From Rebecca billardiae RCC1528 (lineage: Eukaryota > Protista > Haptophyta): a stretch of 64,000 nt of DNA. Positions 7,669-63,800 of the stretch are shown in pieces. A program made the position numbers and the translations under genes. Below the pieces are notes generated by a model. That model made no database searches. It saw only the letters and a program-made list of their open reading frames with translations, and was not told where the DNA came from. Location of the stretch: NCBI GenBank assembly GCA_965240325.2, contig OZ251251.1, forward strand, positions 248,001-312,000, read 5' to 3'. The stretch's first letter is position 1. Every line of letters begins with the position of its first letter.

Positions 7669-10133
7669 TCAGTCCGAGCCCTTGGCCGCGCGCGTGCGCG
7701 CGGCGGAGCGCGTCACGCGCGCGGTCGCGCCGTGCCCGGCGCCCGGCGGCGCCTCGTTCGCCGCCGAGCCACGCCGGGGCTGCAGCGCCGCCGCGCCGCC
7801 GCGCGCGCCGCCCGTCGGCGGCGTGCGCTGCAGCGAGCGCCGTGGCCGGCCCGCGCTGCCACGCGCGCGCGCGCCGCCGCCGCCAGCCGCCGCCTCCTCC
7901 GCCTCGCCCGCGTCAGCCGCCCTCTCCAGCGCCTCCCGGATCGCGCCGACCGGACTTCGCGACACGGAGTGCGACTTGGTGTCAGGTGAGTCGCCCGCGC
8001 CCGCGCCCGCCGGCCCCGCCGCCGACGCGGGCGCGGCGCGCGGCGCGCGGCGCGCGCCGCCGTCCACGGCGTCATCGGAGCGCGCGCGCGCGAGCGAGCC
8101 GGCGGCCGAGCCGCCGCCGCCGGCCGCGACCCGGCCGGCGAGCAGCTCGGAGAGGTCGGAGGACTGGCGGCGGATCTCACGAACGTCCTTCTGGAGTGCC
8201 GCCATCGCCTCCGCCTGCGCCTCCGCAGGGTCCGACCAGCGCAGTAGCGCGCGCGCCGCGGCGAGGCACGCCGTGCACAGCGCGAGCCGCCGCAGGGCCC
8301 ACAGCCGCGCGTGCACCGCCTCCGGCCCCGCCGGGCTGCCGAGGTCGGAGATCGCGATCACGAGCCGCTCGAGCGTCCAGTTGGCGCCGAGCACCGCCAG
8401 CATGTGTGAGCGCGCGCCCGCCGTGCGCTTTGTCGAGGAGAGCAGTACCGCCGCAAACACGCACAGCTGGCGGTGGGGCGGTGCGGCGCGGCGAGAAGGG
8501 ATGGCGGCGGCGGCGGTGGGGGCGGGGATGGTGGGCGGTCGCCGCAGGGTCCGGCCAGTCAGGGGGCGGTCGCGGGCGCCAGCGCGCGCACGCGCGCCAA
8601 GCCGCGCTTGGCGGGCGTGATCGCCAGCCAAGGGGCGGCGCGGGTAGGGTGACGGTTACAGATGACGGTTACGGCCGTGCGGCCGCGCGCACACACCGCG
8701 TGTAGAAGGCCGCCGCCTTCTACGCGGGGCCACGGGTCGGGCGCGGGGGTAGGGCTGGCAAGGGTAGGGCTGGCGCGCGCGCACCGTGTAGAAGGCCGCT
8801 GCCTTGAGGTCGAAGAATTCCCCGAGAAAGGCCGCGTGCAGCTCAAGCAGCGCGCCCAGCTGGGTTAGAACTTCTGCCTGCCGCGTAGCGAACGCCTCCT
8901 GAGCCGCGTGCAGTCGCTCTGCGCGCGCGCGCGCCACCGCCGGGCCGCGCCGACGCCGCGCGGGGCCGGCGTGTGTGAGCCGGCGGCGGGTGTGCGGGCG
9001 GCGGGGCGCGGCGGCCGCGAGCGCTAACAGTCGATCCCGCACGCCAGGGTTTAGGGTTGGGTTAGGGTTCGCTCACTGTCGATCCCGCACGCCAGGGTTT
9101 AGGGTTGGGTTAGGGTTCGCTCACTGTCGATCCCACACGCCAGGGTTTAGGGTTGGGTTAGGGTTCGCTCACTGTCGATCCCGCACGCCAGGGTTTAGGG
9201 TTAGGGTTAGGGTTCGCTCACTGTCGATCCCACACGCCAGGGGTCTCCGCGCGCGCGCGCTCGGGCGCGCGCGCACCCATCGTCTCGGCGGAGGCGCTCG
9301 CCATCGCGCCGAGGCCGTGCAGCGACGTCGCCGTGCGCTCGAACCGCCCCGCCTCCTCCGCGCTCAGCTCCCGAATCTGCCCCGCGAGCGCGCCGGTCGC
9401 CGCCTGCGCTTCCGCCTGCCGGGCCGCAGCCGCGTCGAGCCCTTGGCTGATGCGCGCGGAGGCGGCGGCGAGCTCGTCGAGGCCGCTGAGCGCGGTGTCG
9501 ACGGCGCCGTGCAGCGAGGCCACGGCGTGCTCCGTGCGCGCCTGCGCACGCGCACGCGCACGCGCGCACGGGTCATGGGCGTGCCCACCCGCGAGCGCGC
9601 GCGCGCCGTGTGCACTGGGCGCACGCGCGCACGGCGCGCGCGGCGCGCGTGGCGGCGAGTCGCGCGCGCGCGCGCGCACGGCGCGGCGCGCGCGCCTGGA
9701 AGGCTTCGGACTGCACGTAGAAGCACATCGACTCGGCGTGCTGGTAGAACGTCGTGTACACCGTGTACGGCAGACCGTTGGGCGCGGCGGCCATTGGGCC
9801 GGTGCACTGCTCGATACTCATCTCGTACTCACATGGGTACGTGGGCAGGCCGGACTTGGCGAGGTGGCAGTTGGCGAAGCGCACGGCGAGGCGCGACTGC
9901 GCCACGTCGTCCAGCCCCTTGCAGCCCCCCTGCAGCGCGTCCACGGCCTCGCGCCAGCACGTCGTGCCGCCGCGCCCGGCGCTCATCAGCTCATCGAGCT
10001 GCGCCTTGCCCGCGCGCGCGCGCGCGTCGGCAGCGGCGTCGTGCTGGAAGACGGCGGGCGCGGCGCCAGGGGCGGCGGTGGACGTCGGGGCGAAGAGGCC
10101 CGCCCCCACGAGCAGCGGCGCGAGCGCGAGCAT
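7669..10133 (-). CDS. GEX1: GEX1/Brambleberry/Kar5-family nuclear envelope fusion (karyogamy) protein
   Basis: Approximate exons 10133-9696 (GC donor), 9541-9277, 8918-8785, 8466-7669. Signal peptide MLALAPLLVGAGLFA; Cys-rich domain 'CWREAVDALQGGCKGLDDVAQSRLAVRFANCHLAKSGLPTYPC...IEQCTGPM...YTTFYQHAESMCFYVQSEAFQ'; then coiled coil, 2-3 hydrophobic segments and a basic tail. This is the family architecture. Confidence 0.88.
9030..9242. repeat. 48-49 bp minisatellite (about 4.4 units) containing TTAGGG telomeric repeats, in GEX1 intron 2
   Basis: Unit gtcgatcccgcacgccagggtttagggttgggttagggttcgctcact starts at 9030, 9078, 9126, 9174 and 9223. Confidence 0.95.
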
Positions 10134-17616: not shown

Positions 17617-17861
<245 letters not shown>

Positions 17862-19517: not shown

Positions 19518-20802
19518 ATGCAGCGCCGCAGCTCCGCGTGCAGCGCGAGCGACCCATGGGCCATCGCTCTGCTTCTCTTCGGGTCCGCGCACAGTCTCTT
19601 TGGCGGCGTCAAGCTCGTCGACGCCGTACCGACGCCCGCACCGCCTCCGTCGCCGCCGCCGCCGTCCCCTCCACCGCCACCGTCGCCAAGCCCACCGCCG
19701 GGCGTGCCCGCACCGCCTCCGTCGCCGCCGCCGCCGTCCCCTCCACCGCCACCGTCGCCAAGCCCACCGCCGGGCGTGCCCGCACCGCCTCCGTCGCCGC
19801 CGCCGCCGTCCCCTCCACCCCCACCGTCGCCAAGCCCACCGCCGGGCGTGCCCGCACCGCCTCCGTCGCCGCCGCCGCCGTCCCCTCCACCGCCACCGTC
19901 GCCAAGCCCACCGCCGGGCGTGCCCGCACCGCCTCCGTCGCCGCCGCCGCCGGCCCCTCCACCGCCGCCGCCGCCGTCGCCGCCCCCAAGCCCACCGCCG
20001 AGCGCAGCGCCGTCGACGCCGACGCCACCCCCGAGCCCGCCGCCTCCACCGTCGCCAAGCCCGCCACCGCCTCCGTCACCCCCTCCACCGCCGAGCCCGC
20101 TACCGCCGCCGCCGCCGTCGCCGCCGCCGCCGTCGCCACCCCCACCGCCACCGCCGTCTCCACCGCCCAAGGCTGTGTGCGGTGCCATCTGCTTCTATTC
20201 GGTGCGCGCGAACGAATTCATTCAGCCTCGCGCCGTCAGTCATTGCCGGCATGAGCCGTGATGCAGCCAAGCGTCCATGGCAGCGCCGCCAGCGCGCGAA
20301 CGACGGCGCGCGCGTCACGCGCGTCACGCGCGCATGCCCCCTCTCCACGAGCGCACGCATAACGCCTCCACTGCGATTTCGCGCCCGCTGACCACCCTTG
20401 CGCGGCGGCGCGTGCGATACGCCGCTTTGCGCTCTCTTTGCACGCCGCGCGCAGGTCGTGGGGTCACTGCTGCGGCTGCGCGTGACTACGAAGCTGCCGT
20501 GCCGGCTGCTCGGCATCTGCCGCGGCGACGGCGCTGGGGCGACCGGGACGACCAGCGCGCACGGGATCCGCGCGCTCGCTGGCTACGACGACGATGCAGG
20601 CGCATTTATGATGAGCGATGCTGCTGCCGACTACTGGCTGCCGGCGATCGGTGTGACTGGGCGAGCAGTCAACGATGCCATCGACGTGATGGCAGGGCTT
20701 GCTGTTGGAGCCGCACTGGTTTCACTGGCGAGTGCTGCACTCCTTCTCCACCGCCGCCATCAGCAACGCCGGCGTCGGGCGGCGGCTGGCCTGCCGCAGT
20801 GA
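19518..20802 (+). CDS. Extensin-like Ser-Pro-rich putative cell-surface protein with a C-terminal TM
   Basis: Hydrophobic N-terminus (WAIALLLFGSAHS), repeated 24-aa unit [24 protein letters not shown], probable intron about 20175-20454, last exon ending with a TM (MAGLAVGAALVSLASAALLL) and basic stop-transfer HRRHQQRRRR. Alternative ATG at 19437. Confidence 0.6.
19635..19955 (+). repeat. 72-bp coding tandem repeat (about 4.5 units)
   Basis: Near-identical units encoding [24 protein letters not shown]. Confidence 0.9.
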
Positions 20803-29000: not shown

Positions 29001-29373
29001 CGTGTCGACGCGCCGAGCGTACCTCCAAACGCGTCGACTTTGGCCCTCGTTCGACCTGCACGCGAGACGACGAGGGCAGCAATCGCGAATCGGGCGAAAA
29101 CCCCCCTCGGGAGTCTTCTCACGATGTCCGCTCCGGCGTTGGATTTGGCGCGCGCCGCCCACGCGCTCCGCGCCATGGCCGGCACCTTTTTCGGCCGAGC
29201 GTCCCCAGTGGGAGCTGCGAGGGCGCCCGGTAGTGAGCGAAGCGACCCGGCAGTGAGCGAGGCGATTTTCTTTTCTTTGCGAGGCGATTTTCTTTTTTCC
29301 TTTTCTTTTTCTTATCTTTTTCCCGGGCACTACAAGGGGCGGACCTACGGCCCGCCATAATACACTCAACACT
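26042..29373. mobile_element. Outer 3.3-kb segment bounded by a 13-bp direct repeat (possible TSD)
   Basis: tacactcaacact at 26042-26054 and 29361-29373; T-rich tract and GC hairpin (ggcgg...ccgcc) near the right end. Confidence 0.5.
26065..28067. mobile_element. Putative non-autonomous TIR DNA transposon (2003 bp, 50-bp TIRs, 4-bp ATAA TSD)
   Basis: 26065-26114 gattaaacttttttcaggaatgcgcaccagaaaaagccttaagaatccgc is the reverse complement of 28018-28067 with one mismatch. ATAA flanks both ends (26061-26064 and 28068-28071). No transposase recognised inside. Confidence 0.8.
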
Positions 29374-42945: not shown

Positions 42946-45900
42946 TCAGGAGCCCTCGGCCGCGACCATCGCCGCAAACGAGAACGGGCGGAACGGCCTC
43001 CCGTCGCCCTTGTAGAACTTGCTCTGGAACTCGACCCAGTGCAGCCGCAGCGCGTGCAAAAAGGCGGAGAGGGACTCCATCCCCATCAGAACGACCACCG
43101 TCAGCGCAAACCTGCGCGCGTGCGCGCGCGCAAGCGCGCACGGGGCAAGGCGCGGAGGGCGGGGGGCAGGGCGGCGCGGCGCAGCGGGCACGCAGGCGGG
43201 GAGTCGGCGGGAGAGGGCGCGCGGCGTGGGGCCCCGCGCCCTCCCGCGCGCGCGCGCGTGGCCGCACGGCGGCAGCCGTCGCCGGCAGCGGCGCGTGCGG
43301 CGCGTGCGCGCGGCACGGTTGCGCGCGGCACGGTTGCGTGCGCAGCGCACCAGACGGTCGTGGCGAGCGTGATGCGCACGGCGCAGCCGACTGTGGACGC
43401 GTCCGGGTGCGCGCACGGCGCCAGGCCCATCTCGACGAGCACCTTCTGCCAGAACACGACCTACACACACACACACACACACACACAGAGGGGCACGGAG
43501 CGGGCGGGGGCGGCGCGCGTCTCGCGGCGCACCGGTGAGCCGCCCGCACGGCGCGCGCCGGCCGCCCGCCCCCCCTCAGCGACCAGCCAGCCGCGCTCCT
43601 CGCGTGCCGCCGCGCGCGCGCACCGAGAGCTGGTTGTGCGCGAGCGAGAGCGCCCAGAGCCGGAGGTACGACGCGGTGTTCGAGACGGTGCCGAGCACGA
43701 ACTCGATCGTGTGGATGGCCTGGTGGACCGCACCCTCCACCAACGCCTCCGCCTCCTCGTCGGCGGCGGCGGACGCGGCCGCGACAGCCGCGGCGGAGGC
43801 GCCGCCGGCCGCTGGCGGCGGCGGCTGCGCGTCCGAGGAGGCGTAGGCGCGGGCGGAGAAGGAGGGGCGGCGCACGGCGCAGCTGCTGCCGCCGCCCGCC
43901 GCCGCGCCGGACGCCGCAGCCGCCGCGGCGGCCGGCCGCGCGCGCACGCACGTGCCGCCCGCGTGCAGCAGACTCGGCCCGCCGCCGTCACCCTCGGCGA
44001 GCGCCGCCGCGCCGCCGGCGGCGGCGGCCGCGCCGAGCCCGCCCTCCTCGGCGACGCCGCTGAGCGGGCGCGCGCTCGGCGTGTCGTCGTCGCCCGAGTT
44101 GGACACGTCGTCGAGCAGCCGCCGCCCCTCCGCGCCGTGCAGCTGCGCGCGCCGCCGCTTCCGCGCATACGCCGCGTAGGCGGCGTATGGTTTCGCAAAC
44201 AGCATCCACGGGACGCACGCGAGCGCAAGCAGAAGCAGCAGCAGCTGCGCGCGCGGCTGCGCCTCGAAGAGGGTCTCCTCCGGCGGGACGGCGCCCGGCC
44301 GCATGAAGAAGTTGATCAGCATCGTGATCAGCGAGGGCGGGCGGCGCGCCTCGCCCACCCAGTCGACCGACCACTTGAAGAAAATCGCGCCGACCAAATA
44401 GCCAAACACCGACTGCATGAAGAGCAGTTGAGGCAGCCACTCCGCCCAGATGTCGAGGCGCGCGCGGCGGTGCAGCGCGTTGCCCAGCGAGCAGAGCAGG
44501 CCGAGCGTCATCTGCGCCACGCCGAACACGATCGACAGCTTCATCTTGTACGAGTTGACGAACGACAGCGCGTTCGGCTGCGCGGGCGGCGCGCGCGCGC
44601 GGGCGAGGCGCGCGCGCGCGGCGGCGGCGCGGGGCGGCGCGGCGCGGCGGGGCGCGGCGGCGGAGGCGGCGTGGGGGCGCGGGCGGTGGCGGGGCGTGCG
44701 CGCGGTGAGCGGCGCGATGCGGCGAGAGCGTCGGGCGCAGCCCAGCCCGGTGCAATCCGGTGCGCGCGCAGCAAGTACACCGCGCGCGCAGATGGCGAGG
44801 CCCGCGCCGGGCGTGCCGCCGCGCGCGCGCCCGCCCCGCCGCCGAGGCGGCGGGGGCGCGGCGCGTGCTGTGCCGCGGCCGGTTGGAAGGGGGCGGCCGC
44901 CCTCGGGCGCGCCGGCGGCCGTCCCGAGTACACGGCGCGGGTGTGTGCGCGCGCGCGCGCCCCCCCCGCACGGACGCGCCCGCCCGCCCTTCCCCCGGCC
45001 GCCGCCGCCGCCGCCGCGCCGCGCCGCGCCGCGCCGCGCCGCGAGCGCGCGCGCGCGCGCGGCCGCGGCCGCGCGGAGCGGCCGCGCCGCCAGCGCCGCA
45101 CCTTGCCGTGCCAGACCGGGTCGATGCCAAACGGGTACGTGCGGTGCGGCTGCTTGCGGTACCCGTGCGCCGTGCGCCGCCACGCCGAGCCGAACAGGTT
45201 CACCGAGCAGCCGAAGACGTCGTTGTACACCAGGCCGCAGTAGGTCGCGCACACGCCCATCGCCAGGAGCACGTAACGGCCGTGCCACGGGAAGGACTCG
45301 AGCTCGTCCATCTTGGCCTCGCGCTTCTTGAGCGAGGCCTCGCGCAGGATGTAGCTCAGCGCGAACGCGACGAGCAGCAGCCCGTGCCCCACGTCGCCAA
45401 ACATCAGCCCGAAGAAGAACGGGAACGTAACGGCCGTGAACGGCGCCGGGTTCAACTCATCGGCGCCCGGCGTGCCGTAACCGTCCACGATGGCCTGGTA
45501 GGGCGCGAGCAGCCAGCCGGCGGCGAAGTAGGAGGGCGGCCGCTCGTCCGGCGCGTGCGGGTACGGCGCGCCGTGCGCCGGCCGCTCGAGCGCGTGCAGC
45601 ACCGGCGGCGCGTGCGAGCCGCACCGCTCGGACGCGCGCGCGAGCGCGTCGCGCGTGCGCGCGAGCATCGACTGGGGGATCCACCCCTCGCAGAGTAACG
45701 TCTTTCGGGACGGGTCAAAGTCGCACTGGTTGAGGCAGTGCGCGACGCCCTTGGCGCGGAGGAGCGCGGCGCGCCAGAGCCCCGCGTGCGCCGCGGCGCG
45801 CTCCAGCGTCGCCGCGCGCCGCGCCTTCATCGCCGACAGCACGCGCTGCAAATCCGCCACGCGCACGTTCACGTCGTGAGTCAGCCCGTGCCGCTGCGTT

Positions 45901-48344: not shown

Positions 48345-51300
48345 TCAGAGCTGCTGGTCGAAGCGGATGACCTCCTGCCCCGCGCCGTGCACGAAGAGCA
48401 CGCGCGTGAGCGAGGCGCTCAGCCCCTCCATGTACTCCATGTACCCCACCATCTCCTCGACCGAGCGCGCGCTCACCGCGCCGCTCGCGTCGCGCTCGGG
48501 CTCGGGCGGGTCTGGCAAGTTGAGGATGACAAGCTCTGACTGCGCGGAGCGGCGCGCGATGATCTCGTGGATCTCGCGCCACTCGTACGCGAGCGGCGGC
48601 TCGAGCGGCGCGGGCGGCTCGTCGCCCGACACCGCGGCGGCGGCGGCCTGCGCGGCGTGCGTCGCGTCGCGCGTGAGCAAGCCCTCGAGCTCAGCGGCCT
48701 GAGTGGCCGAGAGCTCGTGCCGCGCGGCGAACGCGCGCAGCTCGGCGAGCTCCTGCTCGGCGGCGGTGAGGCCGGCCGCGGCGGGCTCGGGCAGCGGCGG
48801 CTCGAGCGGTGGCGGCGGCTGCAGCGGCGGGCCCGTGCCGGGCGGCGAGGGCGGCGGCGACGCGTCTGGCCGGCGCAGCAGCGATGCCCGCGAACCACCG
48901 CTGCGGCCGAGCGCGCTGCGCGGCGAGAGGGACTCCGCCACCGAGCTGGCGCCCTCGGCGCTCGCGCCGCAGCCGAGCGGCGAGGCGCACGAGGCGGCGC
49001 GCGCGGCACCCGACGGGCCGCGCTCGACCGGCGGCGGCGCGAGCGCGGAGGACACCGAGCGGCGGCGCAGCGGCAGCGGCGGCGGCTCCTCGTCAGAATC
49101 CAAGTCATCGGCGGCATCGCCCCCCTCCGTGCTCACGCGAGGCGAGAGGAGGCGCGAGCCGCCCGGACCGCCGCCCGGACCGCCCGGCGTCGCGCCCGCG
49201 CCATAGCCGAGTAGCCGGCTCCCTCCGCCGTCGTCGCCGCCGCCGCCGGCCTCCAGGTCCGCGGCGGCCGCGGCGCGCACCATCGCCGGGTCGAGCACCG
49301 ACGGGCGCCGGCGCGCGGCCTGCACCGCCGCGCGCAACGCCTCCTCCTCCGCGCCCGCCTCGCGTGCGACGGGGGATAGCAGGAGGGCGTCTGTGCCCAC
49401 GCCGCTCAGCGGGTCCTCGTTCCTGGCAGCCGCGCGCACACGCACACACACGCACACACGCACGCACACACACGCACATAACCACATACGCACACGCACA
49501 CGCACACGCACACGCACACGCACACGCACACGCGCGCATGGGGGCGGGAGGAGGGTGGCGAGCGGCCGTCGGCGGGGATGGCGGCAGGACGGCGCGCGCG
49601 CGCACGCGGCGCGGCGCATGGGGCTGGCGCTCACCACGCGCGCGTGTCCCGCGCCTGCGTGTACGGCTGCACCGCGCCCGCCGTCACGCGCACCACCTCC
49701 TGTACCTCCGCGCCAATATTAATGATTTTCATCAGCCGCGTGAGCCGCTCGCGGATGAGGCCAGGGTCGGTGGGCGCGTCGGTGACCAGGTGCAGCCGCA
49801 GCGAGCAGCGCCGCCACAGCCGGTGCTTCCGCAGCAGGTTCGCCAGCAGCAGCAGCAGGCCGCCATCGTGCCGGATCCACCACACGTCGATGCAGCCGGC
49901 GCGAAACGGCGCCGACTCGTGCGTCGGAAAGTTCTGCGAAGTTTCCGGCGCGGTCGGTGGCGGTGGTGGCGGCGGGGGGCGTGAGCGCAGCCGCAGGGGG
50001 CGGGGGCGCGCGGCGCGCACGCCAGGCACGCCGCGTGGCACGCACGCACGCCCCGCGCAACGCGGACGCCACACGCACGCCGCCGACGCCGCTCACGCGC
50101 CGCGCGGCGTGCGCGCGCGCGCGCCACGCGCCACGCGCGCCGCGCACGGCACACGCGCGCCGCACGCGCCGCGCGCAGACCTGCAGGTGCTGGCCAAGCA
50201 GCACGGCCTTGGAGGTGCGCGTGCACTGGTGCACCGACTCGATGAAGGGCGGCACCAGCTTGCTCGGGCTGTTCCGCCACCACCACGGCCACCCCATCAG
50301 CACTGTGTTGGGCGTCAGCGGCCCGAGCCCCGCGCACTGAATCGCATAGCCCTTGCCCTCCTGCGCGTCTCGCGCGAGCACGGTCGCTGCGAAGCCGGGC
50401 AGCCCGATGCGCTGCGGGGGCGGGGCGGGGGCACGCGGCGCGGGCGCGGTGGCGCGCGCGGAGGGCGGAGGGGTGTGTGGGCGATGCCGCCCGCCGCGCG
50501 CGCGCGCCTCCAGGGCAGGAGCGCGGGTGGGGCTGAGCCTCGTGCGCGCAGCACACACACGCACACACAGCACACACACGTGCGCGCACGCACACTGCAC
50601 ACACGCTACGCACACACACACGGTACGCACACACGGTACGCACCTTGAAGAGGAAGGTCAGCACACACACACACACACGCACACACACACGGTACGCACC
50701 TTGAAGAGGAAGGTCAGCACACGCACACACACACGCACACACACACGGTACGCACCTTGAAGAGGAAGGTCAGCACACACACACACACACACGCACACAC
50801 ACACGGTACGCACCTTGAAGAGGAAGGTCAGCACACACACACACACGCACACACACACGGTACGCACCTTGAAGAGGAAGGTCAGCACACGCACACACAC
50901 ACTACACACACACACGGTACGCACCTTGAAGAGGAAGGTCAGCACACGCACACACACACTACACACACACACGGTACGCACCTTGAAGAGGAAGGTCAGC
51001 ACACGCACACACACACTACACACACACACGGTACGCACCTTGAAGAGGAAGGTCAGCACACGCACACACACACGCACACACACACGGTACGCACCTTGAA
51101 GAGGAAGGTCAGCACACGCACACACACACGCACACACACACGGTACGCACCTTGAAGAGGAAGGTCAGCACACGCACACACACGCGCACACACACACGGT
51201 ACGCACCTTGAAGAGGAAGGTCAGCACACGCACACACACACGCACACACACACGGTACGCACCTTGAAGAGGAAGGTCAGCACACGCACACACACACACG

Positions 51301-54300
51301 CACACACACACACGGTACGCACCTTGAAGAGGAAGGTCAGCACACACACACACACACACTACACACCCACACGGTACGCACCTTGAAGAGGAAGGTCAGC
51401 ACACACACACACACACACTACACACACACACGGTACGCACCTTGAAGAGGAAGGTCAGCACACACACACACACACACTACACACACACACGGTACGCACC
51501 TTGAAGAGGAAGGTCAGCACACACACACACACACGCACACACACACGGTACGCACCTTGAAGAGGAAGGTCAGCACACACACACACACACTACACGCACA
51601 CACGGTACGCACCTTGAAGAGGAAGGTCAGCACACACACACACACACTACACACACACGGTACGCACCTTGAAGAGGAAGGTCAGCACACACACACACAC
51701 ACGCACACACACACGGTACGCACCTTGAAGAGGAAGGTCAGCACACGCACACACACACTACACACACACACGGTACGCACCTTGAAGAGGAAGGTCAGCA
51801 CACGCACACACACACGCACACACACACGGTACGCACCTTGAAGAGGAAGGTCAGCACACGCACACACACACTACACACACACACGGTACGCACCTTGAAG
51901 AGGAAGGTCAGCACACGCACACACACACTACACACACACACGGTACGCACCTTGAAGAGGAAGGTCAGCACACGCACACACACACGCACACACACACGGT
52001 ACGCACCTTGAAGAGGAAGGTCAGCACACGCACACACACACACGCACACACACACACGGTACGCACCTTGAAGAGGAAGGTCAGCACACACACACACACA
52101 CACTACACACCCACACGGTACGCACCTTGAAGAGGAAGGTCAGCACACACACACACACACACTACACACACACACGGTACGCACCTTGAAGAGGAAGGTC
52201 AGCACACACACACACACACACTACACACACACACGGTACGCACCTTGAAGAGGAAGGTCAGCACACACACACACACACGCACACACACACGGTACGCACC
52301 TTGAAGAGGAAGGTCAGCACACACACACACACACTACACGCACACACGGTACGCACCTTGAAGAGGAAGGTCAGCACACACACACACACACTACACACAC
52401 ACGGTACGCACCTTGAAGAGGAAGGTCAGCACACACACACACACACGCACACACACACGGTACGCACCTTGAAGAGGAAGGTCAGCACACGCACACACAC
52501 ACTACACACACACACGGTACGCACCTTGAAGAGGAAGGTCAGCACACGCACACACACACGCACACACACACGGTACGCACCTTGAAGAGGAAGGTCAGCA
52601 CACGCACACACACACTACACACACACACGGTACGCACCTTGAAGAGGAAGGTCAGCACACACACACACACACACGCACACACACACGGTACGCACCTTGA
52701 AGAGGAAGGTCAGCACACACGCACACACACACTACACACACACACGGTACGCACCTTGAAGAGGAAGGTCAGCACACGCACACACACACTACACACACAC
52801 ACGGTACGCACCTTGAAGAGGAAGGTCATGTACCGCCGCTCCGAGGCCGCGTACGCAATGGCGTCCGGGTGGGACATGCCCTCGTCGTCGAGGAGCTGGA
52901 TGACCGCCGCGGCGATGACGAGGCCCTGCCCCTTGCGCAGCTGGTCCGCGAGCGCGAGCATCACCTTGTGCGTGTGCCCCTCGGGCCGCGCCGCGTCCGC
53001 GCCGCCGCCCGCGTCCGCGCCGCCGCCGCCGCCGTTGGCTGCGGCGGCGGGCGGCGGCGGCGCGTTGAGCGCGCGCGGGCCGAGGGGCGAGGCGGCGGCG
53101 GAGGCGCTGGGGCTGGGCCCGGGCACCTCGGACGGCGCCGCCTCGCCGCCCACCACCGCCGCGTCCTCCGCGTCCACCTGCAGCTGGTACAGCAGCAGCA
53201 CCTGAGGCCGCCATGCGATTTCGAGGTGGGCCTGCATGTCGATGGCGGCGAGCGCGCGCATCGCCAGCTTGAAGCGGAGGCCGTGGAGCGCGGAGCCCCA
53301 GTCGGTCTCGGCGGTGGTGCGCAGGATGTAGAGCACGATGCACACCGCCAGGCACCACGCCACCAGCGCGTACCGGAAGTCGATCGCGAACATCAGCCCG
53401 ACGCACAGCACAAACCCCGCCAGCCCCGACCCCCAGTGGAAGCGGCGCCATTTGGGCCGCCACGACGGGTCCTGGAGGAGGTCGAGGACGAAGCAGGTGA
53501 GGTTCATGCACGCGTAGCAGAGCAGGAAGCACATGGAGACGACCGGCGCGATCAGGTCGAGCGAGCCCGAGAGCACGCACACCGCCGCGATCGCGTACGT
53601 GAGCGCGAGCGCGCGGTGAGGCTCGCCCTTTGCCGAGCGCGCGCCGAGCGGCCGCATCGCTCGGAGTACGCCCTCTTGCGCGACGGACTGGAGGAGCAGC
53701 GGCGCGACGGCGAGGTTCTGGAGCGCCTGGCCGAGGGAGCAGCAGACGATCCCGATCCGCATCGCCGTGACCGACGGCCACGCCAGGTACTCCAGCTGCC
53801 CCGACGAGAGCTGCAGGAACGAGCGCTCGCCCACCGCCGCCCACAGCAGTAAGTAAGCGGAGTAGACGGCGCACGAGATTGTGATCCCGCCGAGCGTGCC
53901 CCAGGGGATGGCGGAGGCGGGCTCGGCGAGCGAGGCGGCGCGGTTGGCGCCGGAGAGGAAGCCGGTGAACGCGGGGAAGAGCAGCCCCAGCGCCGACGAC
54001 ACCGACTGTCCGGCCGAGAAGTCCGGGCCGAAGTTGGCACCCATCGAGGCGGCCGATAGCCCCAGGGCAAACGGCGGCGGCAGCGGCGGCGACGGCGGCG
54101 CGCCGAGCGCGCCACCGGCGGGCGCGGCGGCGGGCTCGGTGGGCTCGGCCGGCGCGGGCGCGAGGTGCGGCGCGCCGAGCAGCGAGACGTACAGCGCGAG
54201 CAGCGTCGCCACCGTCACCGCGAAGAAGCCGAGCCCGAGCCGAGACACAGTCTGCAGCCCCCCGAAGACGAGCGCGCTCAGAGCGAGCATGAACGCCGAG

Positions 54301-55923
54301 CCCCAGAGCTGCACGGCGTAGGCGAAGCGGCCGAGCGAGGCGTCGAGCGCGAGGAAGACCTCCACCGAGCCCAGCCCCTCGAGCACCGCGTTCAGCGTGA
54401 TCCCCAGAAAGTACATCAGCGCGATCGCCGTCGCGATCTCGCGGCCGAGCGCGCGGCGCAACAACGCGTACACGCCCTGTTGCGCGTGCGAGGCGGAGCA
54501 AGTGACGATGGCCGACATCGAGAGAGTGGTGAGCACGGCCGCGCCGTACGAGAGCCACGCGAAGAGCAGCGCGAGGCCCAGCCCGGCGTTCCCCACCACG
54601 AAGTTGAACCGCAGGAAGATCAGCACCCCCCACATGTTGGCGCACACCGGAACTATCACGCCGTCTAGGACGCCGCCCTTGCCGCGCGCCGCGCGCGCGG
54701 CCGGCGGCGGCTGCGCGCCCGCCGCGTGGGCTGGTGGCGGCGCGGCGCCGGCGGGCGCGGGCGCGGGCGCGCGGCGCGAGCCCTGCAAGCGCGACCCCGG
54801 CTCCGGCGAGCGCGGCGGCAGCGCCGACTGGTAGGCCGCCGCCGACGCTTGCGGCGGCGGCGCCGCGGCGCTTGCGGCGGCGGCGGCCGTGCTGGCGGCG
54901 GCACCGCCGCACGCCGCGCGCTTGGCGCAGCCCACGCCCAGCCCGACCGCGCCGGCGCAGCTCGCCGCGGCGGCGCCGCACCCCGCCGCCGCGCGCTTCG
55001 ACCACGAGCCACCGCCGCCGCCGCCGCCGCGCTCGGCCGGCGAGACCGGCTGCTGCTGCTGCGCCGCCGCCGCCGCCGCCGCGCGCTGCGGCTGCTGCCT
55101 CTCAGAGACGACAGCCAACGCGCCGCCGGCATCGCGCGCGGCGTCGGCGGCCTCCGGCTCGCTCTCGTCGCTCGAGCCGACGTGCAGCTGCATGTCCAGC
55201 GACAGCCGCTCCGACGCGTGGCGCGAGCCCGCGGCGGGCCCACAGCCGCCGCCGCCGCCGCCGCCGCCGCCGCGCGCGGCCGCCGCCGCGCCGCCGCCGC
55301 CGCCACTCCCATGTGGACTGGCGCCGCCGCCGCCGCCGCTCGGCGCGGCGGGCGAGGCGGCGCCGCCCGTCGCCGCCGACGCGACCGCGCCCACCGCCGC
55401 CATCGCCGCCGCCGCCGCGCTCGCCGACGCCGCGCCGATCGCCGCGCAGCCGCTCGACGGCGCGCGCGGACCGCCGTGCGCCGCCGCCGCCGCCGGCGTG
55501 GAGCCAGTGGCGGCGGTCGGCGCGGCGCCGAGCGGCGGCTGGAGCGGCGAGGCGCCGAGCTGCAGCCCCGCGGGGAGCGAGGGGAGCGAGAGCGTGCGCG
55601 GCACACGCCGCCCGCCCCCGCCGCCGCCGCCGCCGCGCGCCACGGGCTCCACCGGCGTCAGCGTCCGATCGGCGAGCGTCGGCGACGGGTCGAGAAGGCC
55701 GGGGATTCGCGGCAGCTCGCCCGTGCGGCGGCGCTGCACGCCGCCGGCGGTGGCGCCCGAGCTGCCCTGCCGCCGGCGCATCCGGCCGGGCTGCGCGCCC
55801 TCCGCCGACGTCGGCGTGTGCCCCTGCGCCGGCTCCGCGGGGCTCCGCGTGCCGCCGCCGCTGCCGCGGCGCGCGGCCGCGAGCGCGCTTGGCAGATCGT
55901 CGGAAGAACTGGCACGTGGGACC

Positions 55924-55962
<39 letters not shown>

Positions 55963-56066
55963 AGGGGCAGCTGGAGGCGCGGCGCGGTCGGGAGCCACTC
56001 GAGCGACATCGCGCCGGGCACGCCCATGCGCCCCGGCAGCCGCCCACCGCCCGGCACGTGCTGCGA

Positions 56067-56102
<36 letters not shown>

Positions 56103-56372
56103 GCCGCCGCCTTGCGCCGCCACCCACGAGGCAGGCGGCGCGCGCTGCGGCGGCGCGGGCGGCAGCTGGTCGAGCGCGGGGATCCGCGGCGTCTCGATCC
56201 CGCGCGGCGCCGTCGGCCGGCTGTCCGACCGGCGCCGCGAGCGCGGGCGCGGGATTCTCTGCGGATGTTCTGACACGGTCTCACGAATGCCGCTGCTGCG
56301 CGCGCGCGGGCGGCCGCGCGGCGGCGAGCCGGGCTCGGGCGGCAGCAGGCCGCGGACGGGGCGCTGCGCCAT
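48345..56372 (-). CDS. SLC12: Cation-chloride cotransporter (SLC12/KCC/CCC family)
   Basis: Approximate exons 56372-52812, 50411-50181, 49933-49635, 49422-48345. Motifs 'GVLDGVIVPVCANMWGVLIFLRF', 'LLFPAFTGFLSGANR', 'LDLIAPVVSMCFLLCYACMNLTCF...PSWRPKWRRFHW', 'WRPQVL', 'AGLGPLTPNTVLMGWP', 'IDVWWIRHDGGL', 'LVILNLP...YMEYMEGL...VLFVHGAGQEVI'. Confidence 0.95.
50617..52829 (-). repeat. Tandem array of about 39 copies of exon end + 5' splice site, separated by variable (GT)n spacers, filling SLC12 intron 1
   Basis: Invariant core (minus strand) TGACCTTCCTCTTCAAG|GTGCGTACCGTG every 54-60 bp. The copy at about 52812 is the true exon junction (…MTFLFK|). A 744-bp higher-order duplication is shown by identical ORFs at 51557/52301 and 51682/52426. 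Confidence 0.96.
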
Positions 56373-57858: not shown

Positions 57859-60800
57859 ATGCAGCGCGAGCCCAGGCGCAGCAGCGCCTCGGCCATTGGC
57901 ACGCTCCTCGGCCTCCCGCAGCTGCACGTCGAGTCGGCGCGCAAGTTGCGCCACCACAACCGCCCTCACGCCGGGCCCGCGTCATCGCGCGCGCGCGTGG
58001 GCAGCACGCAGCCGACGCCCGCGGCGGCGGGCGCGCGGCCGCCAGGTGCGGTGGGGAAGGGGATCGGCCCCACGCTGGTGAGCGGGCTCGCCCCGCCGGG
58101 CTTCGCCATCCCACCCCGCCCGCCCTCCACCGACGCGGACGACGACGTCACCTCCACCTCCGAGGCCTCGCACCGGTCGACCACCTTTGAGGCACCTGCG
58201 CCTGTTCTCACGTGGAGCGCGACGTTCGAGGACCGCGACGTGGAGGGCCTCTTCGTCGCCACCGACCTGAAGCCGGTGCGCGCGCGCGCGCGCGTCGTCG
58301 CCGCGCCGCTGCGCGCGCGGCGTCTCGCGAGCCCCCGGGAGGCGGCGCAACCGACGCCGCCCGGCCGCCCGCGCCGCCCGCCCCTCCTGCGCCGCCACCG
58401 CCATGCCCGGCGTGCGCGCCGCGCGCCGCCCGGCATCGGGCCCCTGCGGCGTGTGCAGGTGTACGCCGTCCGCACCGGCTTCGTCGGCCTGCTCTTCCTC
58501 GGCGCCTGGCTGCCGCTTGTCGGCATCGAGGCGAGCGCGCTGCCGCCGGGCGCGGGCGCGGCTGACTCGCCGGCGCTCTGGCTGTGTGTTGCTGGCGCGG
58601 CGGCGTGCGCGGGCAAAGTGGTGCTCGCGTGGCTGACGCAGGCGCTGCGGCTGCGGCTGCGCTGGCTCGAGGCGTACGTCACGAGCGCGATGCTCCTCGA
58701 GGTCTTCGCCCTCGCCCTCGTCTTCTCGCCGCGCCGCCTCGCCGCCGTCCTCGGCTCGCCGCCCGCCGCCGCGGGCTGGGATCATTCTGCCGCTGAGGTG
58801 CTGCTGCGAGTGGCGGTGGTGCCGCTGGTGAGCAGCACGCTCATACCGATACAGCCGGTGCGTGCGCGTGCGCGCGGCGCGGCGCGGGGCGCGCGCGGGG
58901 CGCACGGCTTGCCAGGCCGCTGCGCGCGCGCCACCGACGGCAGCAGCGCGCGCGCGCGCGCGCTCGGCCGCGCCGCGGGCCGCGCGCTGCTGCTGCGCCG
59001 CTCGTGCCCCCGCGCTCACGCCGCCCCCCGTCCCGCCCCCTCCGCCGCCGCGCGCGCGCGCGGCGCAGGTGGCGTGGTGCATCTTCACCGCGCTGCTGCT
59101 CGCGCTGCTCACGGCGCTGCAGCTCGCTGTGCCCCGCGGCGGCGGCGGCGGCGGCGGCGCGGGCGGCGGCGGCGCGGGCGGCGCGGGCGCGGAGGCAATT
59201 TCGGCCGATGCTTCGTTCGTCGAGGCGTCGAACACCGTGGCGTTCCTGCTGCTGCTGTTCGGCAGCGGGCTGGCCGGCCGCTTCTACCTCGTCCTCTCCC
59301 GCCGCATCCAGTTCCACTTCCGCCGCTCTGTCGTAACCGCCCTCGCAGACAAGTCCCGCGAGGCGCGCGAGCGACGCCGGTTGCAAGAGGAGCACCGCTC
59401 GGCGCGCGAGGAAGCGATTTCGGCCGACGCGGCGAAGACGGCGCGGAGCAGGCTGATCCGGATGGTGCGCGGGCGGCGCGGGCGCGGCTGCCGGCCGAGC
59501 GCGCCGCGCACGCGCCGCGCACGCGCCGCGCCGGCTCTGGCCGCGCGCGCCGCCGCCGCGCGCCGCCGCAGCGCCTGCCGACACGCGCGCTCGCGTCGCG
59601 GCCGTGGCGCCGCGCGCCCCCGCCCCCGCGCCCGTGCCCTCCTCGACGTCGTCGTCGTCCGCAGGTGATGCACGACCTGCGCAGCCCGCTGCTCTCCGTG
59701 ACCAACCTCGCCGCCTCGCTGCAGGCCCTCGCGCCCAACACGCGCCTCGACGCGCCGCCGGTGCGCACCTCGCTCGACGCGCTCGTCACGTGCGCCACTC
59801 TCATGGAGCACATCGTCGTCGACATGCTCGGTGCGCGCGGGGTGGAGGGTTGGGGGTAGGGTTGGGGCGTGGTGTGTGCCGTGGCTCGCGCCCCGGTGGG
59901 GAGGGGAGGGCTAGGCCCTGCCCGACCCGACCGTGCGCGCACGCACCCGAGGCGCGGCGCGCGGCGCGGTGCGGCTGTGGGTGTGCAGTCGGCAGGGCGC
60001 GGCGTGCGGCGTGCGGCGCGCACGCCACCGCCCACCGCGCCGCTGCCTGCCTCACCTGGCTGGCCCACGCCCCTCCGGCCACACGCCCTCCCCCCCCCCA
60101 ACCCACCAGACTTTGAGCGCATCGACGCGGGCCGGCTCGAGCTGCAGCGCTCGCCCTTCTACGTGACAGGGCTGCTGCGTGACGTGCTGGCCACCTTTGG
60201 CGGGATCGCCAAGGCCAAGGGTGCGCGCTGGCTGCCTGGTGAGGGTTGGGGTGGGTAGGGTGGGGGTGAACCGCCTAACCCTAACCAAGGGTGCGCGCTG
60301 GCTGCCTGGTGAGGGTTGGGGTGGGTAGGGTGGGGGTGAACCGCCTAACCCTAACCAAGGGTGCACGCTGGCTGCCTGGTGAGGGTTGGGGTGGGTAGGG
60401 TGGGGGTGAACCGCCTAACCCTAACCAAGGGTGCACGCTGGCTGGCTGGCTGGCTGCGCGGCGGGCGGGCGGGCGGGGGGAAGGGGGCGTGTGCACGGGA
60501 GCACGCGCGCAAGCCGCCGCGGCGGTGGGGAGGTGGCTTTGCTCGGTGCCGTCGGCCCCGCCACACCCCGCCGCCCCCGGCCCACCCGCCTCATCGCCCC
60601 CGTCTCCGCGCCCCCGTCTCCGCGCGCCGCAGGCGTGTCCCTCCTCGCCCTGCCGCCGCCCGAGCCGCTCCCGTCCCTGCGGCTGGTGGGCGACGCGCGC
60701 CGGCTGCAGCAGTGCCTCAACAACCTCGTCTCGAACGCGGTGCGTGTGCGTGTGTGCGTGTGCGCGTGTGCGCGTGTGCGTGCGTGTGCGTGCGTGTGCG

Positions 60801-63800
60801 TGCGCGTGTGCGCGTGTGCGTGCGTGTGAGCGTGTGCGTGCGTGTGTGTGTGTGCGTGTGTGTGCGTGTGTGTGCGTGTGTGCGTGTGCCGCCGCGCGCC
60901 GCCCTCCGACGGCCCCGCCCGCCCGCGCGCCGCCGCCCCGCCTGCCCACCGCGGCGCCGGCGCGCGCCGCGTCCCGCACGCAGATCAAATTTGCCGAGCG
61001 CGGCGGCACAGTGACGGTGCGCGCGGTGCTGGCGGGGTCGGAGCCGATGGCGCCGCCCGGCACCGCGCACCAGTCGTCGAGCGCCACCGACCCTGGAGGC
61101 GGCGGCGGCGGCGGCGGCGCGGGCGGGGCCGTGGGCGTGCCCGCGGCGGCGGCCACCGCCTCCTCGTCCGCGGCGGCGGCGGCGGCGGCGGGCCGCGGCG
61201 GCGGCGCGCGGCGCGCGGGCGGCACGCCGCCGCCGCCGCCGCTCGGCCGCGTCGCCTCCGAGCCCGGCGCGCGCGGCGAGGACGCGGGCGATCTGCTGAC
61301 CCTCGTGCGCGTCTCCGTCTCCGACGACGGCATCGGCCTCTCCGCCGAGGAGCTGCGCATGCTCTCGCAGGGGCTGTTGTTCCAGCAAGTGGGCAAAGGC
61401 CAGCTGCAGGGCAACGGGGGCACCGGACTCGGGCTTAGCATCACACGGCAGCTGCTTGCGCTGCACAACGGCTCGACGCTCGAGCTGGAGAGCGCGGGGC
61501 ACATGCGCGGCACGACGAGCACGCTGTGCGCGCCGCGTGCCGCGCGCCGCACCGCGCCGCGCTACGCCGGGCCGTGCGGTGCGCTCACGCGCCGCCCGCC
61601 GCGCGCGCGCCGCCTCCTCTCCGCGCGCCCCGCGCCGCTGTTGCGCGCGCAGCTGCCTCCGCCTGCCGCAGGACGCCGCGGCCTCGTCCCCCCGCGCCGA
61701 GCGGTGCGGCTCGGAGCAGCAGCTGTGCGTGTCGGCCGTGGGCTCGGGCACGCCGCTCTCCTCAGCGCCTTCGACCAACCCCGGCACGCCGGGCGGCGGC
61801 GGCGGCGGCGGGCGGTTCGGTCGAACGGACAGCGGCGGCGGCGGCAGCACCAGCAGCAGCTCCCCTATGCCTCGCAAGTTCACCACGGGCGCGACGGGCA
61901 AGGGCGGCTCCATGTCCGGCGGCTGGGGCGCGCGCGCCGACGCCGTCGACCTCGCGAGCATGGCCCAGATTAGCGGCGGTGGCCGGACGCGCGCGCAGCA
62001 CCCGTCGGCGCGCAACCGCGCGCACACGATGCACCAGGCTGCGCTCGAGAGGTGCGTAGCACTGCGCACACACGCACGCGCACGCACACTCACTCACACA
62101 CACACGCGTACACACACACACGCGCACACACGCACACACACGCCGCGCGTGCGTGCCGCGAGCCCTCGCCGAGCTCGCGGCCTGCGACCGCCGAGTCGCG
62201 CGCGCCCGCCGCCGCGCCGCGCGCCGCCGTGCGACTGCGCGCGCTCTGAGCCGGGGCCCCGCGCCGCCGCCGCCGCGCCGCGCCCGCGCGCGCGCAGCCA
62301 GCTGCCCAACTGCGGGGCCGGGAGCCCGCTCGCGCGCGCGCACTCGTATGCGCAGCGCGCGTGCGGCGCGCGGCCGCCGGGCGCGCGGCAGTTGGCGCCG
62401 CTGCCGCTCGACTCCACCGCGGAGGGCGACGGCTCGCCTGAGCAGCGCACAGGCCCGGGGCCGCAGCTGCCGGGCGCGCCGCCGCTTGCAGAGGAGGTTG
62501 CCAACGCCCTCGCCTCGGCCGAGGCCAATGGCGCCGTCGCCCGCCGGAGCGGCGGCAGTAGCGCGCCCGACGCCGCCGCCGCCGCCGCCGACGCCGACGA
62601 CGGCGGCGCCACGCTCGTCGAGCCGTTCACCGAGCTGCAGCAGCCTGGCGCGCGCTCGCCCGGCGCGCCCTCGGCGCCGCCGGCGCCGACCGCGCTGCCG
62701 CCGGCCGCGGGCCCGCGGCCGCACGGCCCGCTGCGCTGCCTCTACGTCGAGGACGACCAGGTGCGGGCTAGGGGTCAGGGCTAGGGTTAGGGTTCGTAGG
62801 CTAGGGGTAGGCGTGGGGGGTAGGGTGCGGGGCGAGCCGCGCGCGCGCGCGCAGGGCGTGCGCGGCGGGGCGCGAGCGCACGCGGCGCGCGCCTGACTCG
62901 CTCCGCGCACGCCCCCGCGCGCCGCGCCGCCGCCCCTTTGTGGCTCGCCCGCCGTCCCCGCCGCGGCGTTGTGCCGCCATCTCCCGTTCGTTGATTGCAT
63001 GTGCCGCCGCAGTTCCTGCAGCTGACCGTGCCCACGCGCATCTTCGATGCGGTGGGCGTGACGGAGTGGGCGTCTGCGGCGGACGGCGAGGCGGCGGTGG
63101 AGGCACTCTACGGGCCGGGCGGGACGCAGTACGACGTGATCGTGATGGACAAGTGCGCGCCGCCGCCGCACCCGCCGCCGTTCGCGTGTGCGGCCGCCGC
63201 CGCGTGTGCGCGTGGCGGGCGCGCCGCGCCGCGCGCCCGCGCCCCCGCCCGGCCGCTAAACCGCGCGCGCCTGGCCCGCCCTGCCGCGCGCGCCCCCCCC
63301 GCCCCTCTGCCGCGCAGCCAAATGCCGCGCATGAACGGCACGGAGGCGACGCGCGAGCTGCGCCGCCGCGGCTTTGGCGGGCTCGTCGTCGGCATGACGG
63401 GTGCGCGGCGCCCCGCGCGCCGGAGAGCCCCCGCCCCGCCCCGCGCCCGGCCGGCCGTCCGCGTCGCGCAGCGCGCGCACGTGTGCCCTTCCTTTTATTA
63501 TTAGTATTTGCACTACGATGTATGTTTGATTTGTTCTTTGGCTGATGATTCGCTGCGCTCCGTGGGTTGTGTGCTCGCGGTCGCCGTGCGCACGCGCGCC
63601 GCCCCCGCGCCGGCCGCAGGCGACCCCGCGGGCTGCGTCGAGCGCGACGACTTTGAGGGCTCCGGGCTGGACCTGTGCGTGGACAAAGATACCACCGGTA
63701 TCAACACGGTCGCGCAGCTCATCGAGGCCGAGGTGGCGAAGCGGGCGGGCGCCGCCGCTGGCGGCGGCGGTGGCGGCGAGGGTGGCGAGGCAGCGGGCGC

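Follow-up and report, generated by a model that had tools for sequence, protein, structure and literature searches.

The SLC12 gene and its array-bearing intron

The window, a stretch of 64,000 nucleotides from the haptophyte Rebecca billardiae RCC1528 (assembly GCA_965240325.2, contig OZ251251.1, positions 248,001 to 312,000; coordinates below are those of the window), carries on its minus strand a transporter gene in which one intron is occupied mainly by tandem copies of the gene's own exon-intron junction. Homology identifies the host gene as an SLC12 cation-chloride cotransporter. An AA_permease domain (PF00324, E 1e-25) was found in the translation of 52812-54650, and the SLC12 C-terminal domain (PF03522) was found in three downstream exons (50181-50411, 49634-49939, and 48348-48701), the first of which matches profile positions 51-115. 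The G+C content is 71.6% in the window, similar to that of Diacronema lutheri (73%, PMC8379373), and at third codon positions (GC3) it reaches 0.96 in exon 1.

The product of joining 52812 to 50411 aligned without gaps with 16 homologs (8 + 8). In the closest of these, P0041 (54% identity), the sequence across the junction is KRFMSYLYK/RLGLQGF, compared with RRYMTFLFK/RIGLPGF in the window (here and below, a slash marks a joint). The tblastn high-scoring segment pair of P0041 (q16-699) stops exactly at 52812 and picks up again at 50414/50411. Because the junction aligns gaplessly in the 16 homologs and the segment pair ends at 52812, the intron was delimited as 52811-50412. It is exactly 2400 nt long, begins with GTGCGT and ends with CAG. 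On this alignment the authentic donor is the most upstream of the many copies described below. The parts of the gene that flank the intron are:

52812-55076, minus strand: SLC12 exon 1, the homology-supported part, covering the AA_permease membrane domain and where the C-terminal domain begins, ending ...YMTFLFK (PF00324; tblastn with P0041)
52800-52811, minus strand: donor 1, GTGCGTACCGTG, the authentic and most upstream donor (gapless junction alignment with the 16 homologs)
50181-50411, minus strand: SLC12 exon 2, beginning RIGLPGF... (Pfam, homolog alignment and tblastn)

The best database identities were 48% and 54% in the SLC12 searches and 64% in the search with the V-ATPase, so that none of these searches gave an identical protein. 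A Perkinsus homolog has an intron 12-13 residues upstream, a position different from that of the array-bearing intron. Two sequences from related algae, P0002 and P0042, share the same sequence up to ...AIQWAG, about 28 residues past the SLC12 junction. Beyond this point P0002, which is an MMETSP transcript labelled as complete, has 12 unrelated residues and stops, and P0042 goes on with LGPLVPNT.... Lack of splicing or alternative splicing, at another intron position, probably explains the P0002 transcript.

Structure of the array

Read on the minus strand over 50200-53300, the exon ends in ...CGGTACATGACCTTCCTCTTCAAG and is followed by GTGCGTACCGTG. The repeated core has 29 nt and consists of the last 17 nt of the exon, TGACCTTCCTCTTCAAG, and the first 12 nt of the intron, GTGCGTACCGTG. 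A script that searched both strands of the window for exact matches found 39 copies of the core on the minus strand, the first beginning at 52828 and the last at 50660, and none outside the array on either strand (chance expectation for extra copies, about 4e-13). From -17 to +12, each of the 39 copies matched the real donor exactly; there was not one substitution in 39 x 29 nt. Unit 1 begins at 52828 and spans the exon-intron boundary, the exon ending at 52812.

The units are 54-60 nt long, each with the invariant core and a GT-rich spacer of 25-31 nt. The spacers resemble GT/GC microsatellites and fall into 12 variants, which differ by at least five point changes in addition to length changes and which follow each other along the array in the order AJEABACFGCDDHIBAABACFGCDDHIBKBBAAALEBC (one letter per variant). 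The array also contains a higher-order duplication, seen as an exact run of 730 bp at an offset of 744, which corresponds to 13 units (52660-51931 = 51916-51187). Tandem Repeats Finder placed the array at 50608-52828. Runs of alternating purines and pyrimidines of at least 12 nt made up 53% of the intron, of which about 190 nt is left as a non-repeated tail. An Rfam search of the window gave no match. The components of the intron are:

50632-52828, minus strand: minisatellite of 39 units (core count and unit analysis)
51931-52660, minus strand: copy A of the higher-order repeat, with 13 units (exact 730-bp match, offset 744)
51187-51916, minus strand: copy B of the higher-order repeat, a perfect match to copy A (evidence as for copy A)
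50412-50631, minus strand: core-free intron tail, in which a 40th GTGCGTACC that lacks the exonic portion stands at 50630, followed by GT/GC-rich relics, a stretch rich in C and, at 50414-50412, the CAG acceptor

A first-pass annotation had described a 2.4-kb SLC12 intron with its acceptor at 50412, filled with about 39 tandem junction copies that alternate with (GT)n spacers, each unit offering a donor identical to the real one, and with a 744-bp duplication of 13 units. Pfam, gapless homology and tblastn agree on the intron, whose length is 2400 nt; the core count reproduced the copy number and the identity from -17 to +12 in 39 of 39 units; and the duplication is present in the assembly as the 730-bp exact run.

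Origin and growth of the array

The 17 exonic nucleotides of the core encode residues homologous to those of relatives (MTFLFK, compared with MSYLYK and AALMK). Since these nucleotides are ancestral coding sequence, the repeats derive from the exon and not the reverse. For the same reason, and because the core is unique in the window, a transposon-derived (introner-type) intron was rejected as a candidate. In a metagenome scan, a degenerate pattern that fits the junction in its genomic as well as its spliced form picked up two bacterial contigs; these were discarded as chance matches, with MTFLFK as a gene start.

The units are joined at GTGTGC/TGACC, the corresponding place in the exon reads ACA/TGACC, and GTGTGC/TG occurs twice in the non-repeated intron tail (50575 and 50556). 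The array would have started with a tandem duplication of about 56 nt, comprising the last 17 nt of the exon and the first ~40 nt of the intron, whose joint probably formed at TG microhomology. The intron would have existed already, with a length of about 250 nt and a sequence rich in GT microsatellite; the remaining tail and the seven homology-guided introns in the window, of about 150-560 nt, suggest this length. Expansion to 39 units could then have proceeded by unequal exchange or replication slippage, to which alternating purine-pyrimidine sequence is prone, and the latest step may have copied the 13-unit block.

The unchanged cores, the point and length changes in the spacers, and the perfect 13-unit block indicate growth that is recent and due to unequal exchange or slippage; the absence of substitutions in 39 x 29 nt and the exact duplication of 730 bp argue for the young age. 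The array supports an approximately tenfold enlargement of the intron by amplification of its own exon-intron junction.

Tandem duplication of a splice junction is also the basis of the Rogers model, in which an intron is reportedly gained when an exon segment containing AGGT is duplicated in tandem in the genome and a new intron arises inside the exon. The SLC12 array resembles that model in that the duplication involves a splice junction and is tolerated as splicing removes the extra copy. The two differ in that the SLC12 core includes 12 nt of pre-existing intron, and thus an existing intron was enlarged, not born.

The 100% identity of the two 13-unit blocks across 730 bp could also be taken as a sign that the array is real and its length an artefact of long-read assembly or polishing, above all in the perfect 744-bp block duplication. 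An array of 2.2 kb, however, easily fits one long read, the 12 spacer variants outside the duplicated block stand in non-periodic order, and the other long simple repeats of the window were assembled cleanly. We regard inflation by the assembly as very unlikely.

Reading frame and use of downstream donors

Each unit downstream of the first presents a potential donor, and the reading frame of exon 1 determines what its use would yield. The open reading frame at 52710-56372 reads through the first two units, as had been noted before, and closes at a TGA that starts unit 3. This stop codon sits 33 codons beyond the end of the exon and is retained with every donor from 3 to 39. Donor 2 is the only pseudo-donor with an open frame; its use would add 57 nt (19 amino acids), and the product stays open into exon 2. 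Two short features define these outcomes:

52710-52712, minus strand: TGA in the frame of exon 1 at the start of unit 3, which ends every product of donors 3-39 (frame analysis)
52743-52754, minus strand: donor 2, the only pseudo-donor with an open frame, +57 nt, 19 amino acids (frame analysis)

In 16 donors the cumulative added length is divisible by 3, but divisibility gives no further isoforms because the TGA of unit 3 comes first. As judged from the frame, the number of extra isoforms is at most one. The array was accordingly not classed as an alternative 5' splice-site array that yields in-frame isoforms, since donor 2 alone keeps the frame open.

These results bear on the proposal that the array is an isoform generator, whose downstream donors would extend the cytosolic domain by Cys-rich modules (VRTVCVC...LTFLFK). 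In its favor are the 57 nt that donor 2 adds in frame and the constitutive use of second and third donors in the human genes IFI6 and CBS (PMC1557585). The stop that donors 3 onward run into leaves room for a single extra isoform, though, and none of the 16 aligned homologs has an insertion at the junction point. Such a function appears extremely improbable. The first-pass annotation had been right about growth of the intron by junction amplification, which holds as a description of copies identical from -17 to +12 in an intron about ten times longer. Its tunable supply of Cys-rich inserts, with units added whenever the length is a multiple of 3, fails at the unit-3 TGA, which stops every donor from 3 on and leaves an insert of 19 amino acids as the one open product.

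Comparison with human junction-spanning minisatellites

Minisatellites whose first monomer lies across an exon-intron boundary have been described in five human genes (Borensztajn et al., 2006; PMC1557585). They are the variable-number tandem repeat of F7 intron 7 (IVS7), with a 37-bp monomer in 5-9 copies; the IFI6 (6-16) exon 2/intron 2 minisatellite, with the authentic donor and 25 pseudo-sites; the CBS intron 13 minisatellite of 15-20 monomers; and those of LMNB2 (10-15 copies of 100 bp) and PDGF intron 4 (16-18 copies of 81 bp). The first donor alone is used in F7, LMNB2 and PDGF, and the second and third donors are used besides the first in IFI6 and CBS. In F7 minigenes the functional site that lay most upstream was chosen whatever the number of monomers, from 1 to 12 (PMC1557585).

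By its layout the SLC12 array is of this type and is notable for its copy number and its host. It is a head-to-tail array of monomers in the 10-100-bp range (39 units of 54-60 nt), its first monomer crosses the exon-intron boundary (exon end at 52812, unit 1 from 52828) and its pseudo-donors are identical to the authentic donor over the 29-nt core in 39 of 39 units. As in F7, the authentic donor in the boundary-spanning monomer is followed by strictly identical pseudo-donors, and use of the first donor would leave the array wholly within the intron. Of the monomer, 17 nt are exonic in the SLC12 array and 4 nt in F7, and the copies number 39 compared with 5-9. Upstream-only use has been proven experimentally for mammalian F7, for which copy-number polymorphism is also documented. 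Like the arrays in IFI6, CBS, LMNB2 and PDGF, it is a junction-spanning minisatellite that reiterates the splice donor; unlike them, its units vary from 54 to 60 nt and, among the pseudo-donors, only donor 2 would be productive. Its 39 copies exceed those of all four, and its host is an alga. Literature searches for similar junction-repeating arrays in haptophytes or other algae found nothing relevant.

Splicing of the intron

The array is probably a young minisatellite, neutral or mildly harmful, that is spliced out from donor 1. On the F7 precedent, and in keeping with the homology of the protein, the productive mRNA would join the donor at 52811 to the acceptor at 50412 and so lose the whole array. 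The 38 identical pseudo-donors would be mostly silent, although donor 2 may see low-level use, and we infer that the array has no protein-diversifying role. Introns rich in pseudo-donors appear normal in this window, because another one, in the histidine-kinase gene (60740-60983, plus strand, 244 nt), is largely (GTGCGT)n-like with 16 GTGCGT hexamers, and its conserved HATPase N-box (NLVSNA/IKFAERGG) places the used donor at the first of them.

Several observations weigh against this reading. At 2.4 kb the SLC12 intron is an outlier in length among the introns of the window, and the rule for donor choice established in mammals may fail in an alga with short introns. The contrast between no substitutions in the cores and at least five point changes in the spacers has, on a rough estimate under equal rates, a probability of about 0.03 and could hint at constraint or conversion; microsatellite hypermutability accounts for it equally well. 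The sequence TGTAG/TG is present in 20 units, each time with CTGAC about 40 nt upstream. In the neighboring V-ATPase subunit a gene, the TAG acceptor of one intron (~43460-43490, minus strand) immediately follows a (GT)n run, and TGTGTAG recurs 20 times in the SLC12 array. Cryptic exons of 34-36 nt are therefore conceivable, since the 20 TGTAG/TG sites resemble this genuine acceptor.

The same sites enter into an alternative in which the array acts as a decoy or expression rheostat. Many transcripts would then use downstream pseudo-donors or cryptic mini-exons, the unit-3 TGA would lead to degradation or to a protein lacking the C-terminal domain, and copy number would set the dose of SLC12. 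The identity of 38 of 38 pseudo-donors to the real donor (-17 to +12), the premature stop reached from all of donors 3-39 and the 20 TGTAG/TG sequences, which with their upstream CTGAC look like usable 3' sites, are consistent with it. In F7, on the other hand, donor choice was unaffected by monomer number and the pseudo-sites did not compete (PMC1557585), and the exact 730-bp duplication and unordered spacer variants resemble neutral turnover and not a tuned length. Both the diversion of transcripts and its proposed effect on dose seem unlikely.

A further alternative is stepwise, traceless removal, in which splicing from any donor to a later AAG regenerates the same junction, so that a mis-spliced mRNA could be spliced again. 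The intron has 38 copies of CTGACCTTCCTCTTCAAG/GT, and in units 2-39 the joint gives rise to CTGAC, behind which come 11 nt of pyrimidines and an AAG that abuts GTGCGT. The sequence in unit 1, which lies in the true exon, is ATGAC, and thus it is the unit joint that creates the branch-like motif. AAG, however, serves poorly as an acceptor, and wherever the acceptor of a homology-guided intron could be read, it was CAG or TAG and not AAG. The branch-like motifs of the local introns read CTCAC and lie at least 45 nt from the AG, and the mini-introns would be 54-60 nt long, far under the 150-560 nt of the window introns. We find this route hardly credible.

A related comparison is offered by recursive splice sites, at which, within long Drosophila and vertebrate introns, a 3' splice site adjoins a 5' splice site. 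The SLC12 units share with them a branch-like motif, a pyrimidine tract and an AG beside GT, at which splicing would regenerate a donor, but they have AAG instead of CAG/TAG and a spacing of 54-60 nt instead of kilobases. They were not assigned to this class, as the AG that accompanies CTGAC and the 11-nt pyrimidine tract in 38 units is AAG, not YAG.

Tandem identical donors amount to a naturally occurring test of how a 5' splice site is chosen. The cases studied so far are few, all human, and have at most 26 copies; the SLC12 array has 39, in an alga with otherwise short introns. Its transcripts would tell whether the rule that the most upstream site wins applies beyond mammals and what the array costs in unproductive splicing. 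In itself the array is most likely a neutral minisatellite within an otherwise intact transporter gene, and it documents tenfold growth of an intron through copying of its own 5' end. A broader view, that junction amplification gives this very GC-rich alga a recurrent and mechanism-driven route to longer introns, with arrays perhaps removed stepwise or tolerated by re-splicing, strikes us as decidedly unlikely. Such removal or tolerance is conceivable because the units hold branch-like and acceptor-like signals beside the donor, and if the route were recurrent, the arrays would be a natural test bed for choice among identical 5' splice sites outside animals.

Other tandem arrays in the window

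Of the 7 arrays in the window with a long period and high identity, about 2-3 extend across a junction. With a unit of about 56 nt and introns of about 300 nt, chance would carry the unit over the 5' boundary about 1 time in 5, and selection also acts against exonic arrays; no enrichment of junction-spanning arrays is claimed from this window.

At the 5' end of an intron of the histidine-kinase gene, a 70-nt unit is repeated 3.4 times (60215-60449, plus strand). The unit comprises about 20-24 nt of exon end (CCAAGGGTGCRCGCTGGCTG...), GTGCGC and GTGAGG as donor-like sequences, and a telomere-like insert of 46 nt whose arms are G-rich and CCCTAA. It closes with a partial copy of the exon part, and the build of this array, (duplication + insert)n + duplication, is unlike that of the SLC12 array. 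On that strand, HATPase_c follows downstream.

A 48-nt unit repeated 4.6 times with 96% identity (9022-9242, minus strand) shares this build of duplication plus telomere-like insert. Read on the minus strand, the unit contains CCTGGCGTGYGGGATCGAC, AGTGAGCG and telomere-like repeats of the CCCTAA type, and a fifth copy of the 19-nt part closes the array, which lies downstream of a minus-strand stretch with coding periodicity and a GC3 of 0.9-1.0. Pfam gave no match at this locus, which is a probable further junction-repeating array. A 20-nt x 2 repeat at 29226 was rejected as a junction array, as its surroundings are AT-rich and without coding periodicity.

Three other repeats were noted. A 59-nt unit with many CCCTAA-like motifs, which ends in GTGCGT, is present twice at 1900-2019. 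A 72-nt unit repeated 4.8 times with 98% identity (19634-19975) has a length that is a multiple of three, would be Pro/Ala-rich if coding, and adjoins a longer, degenerate CCG-rich array. At 17619-17858 is a near-perfect (AT)120 tract, 240 nt long with 99% matches, although the window has a G+C content of 72%.

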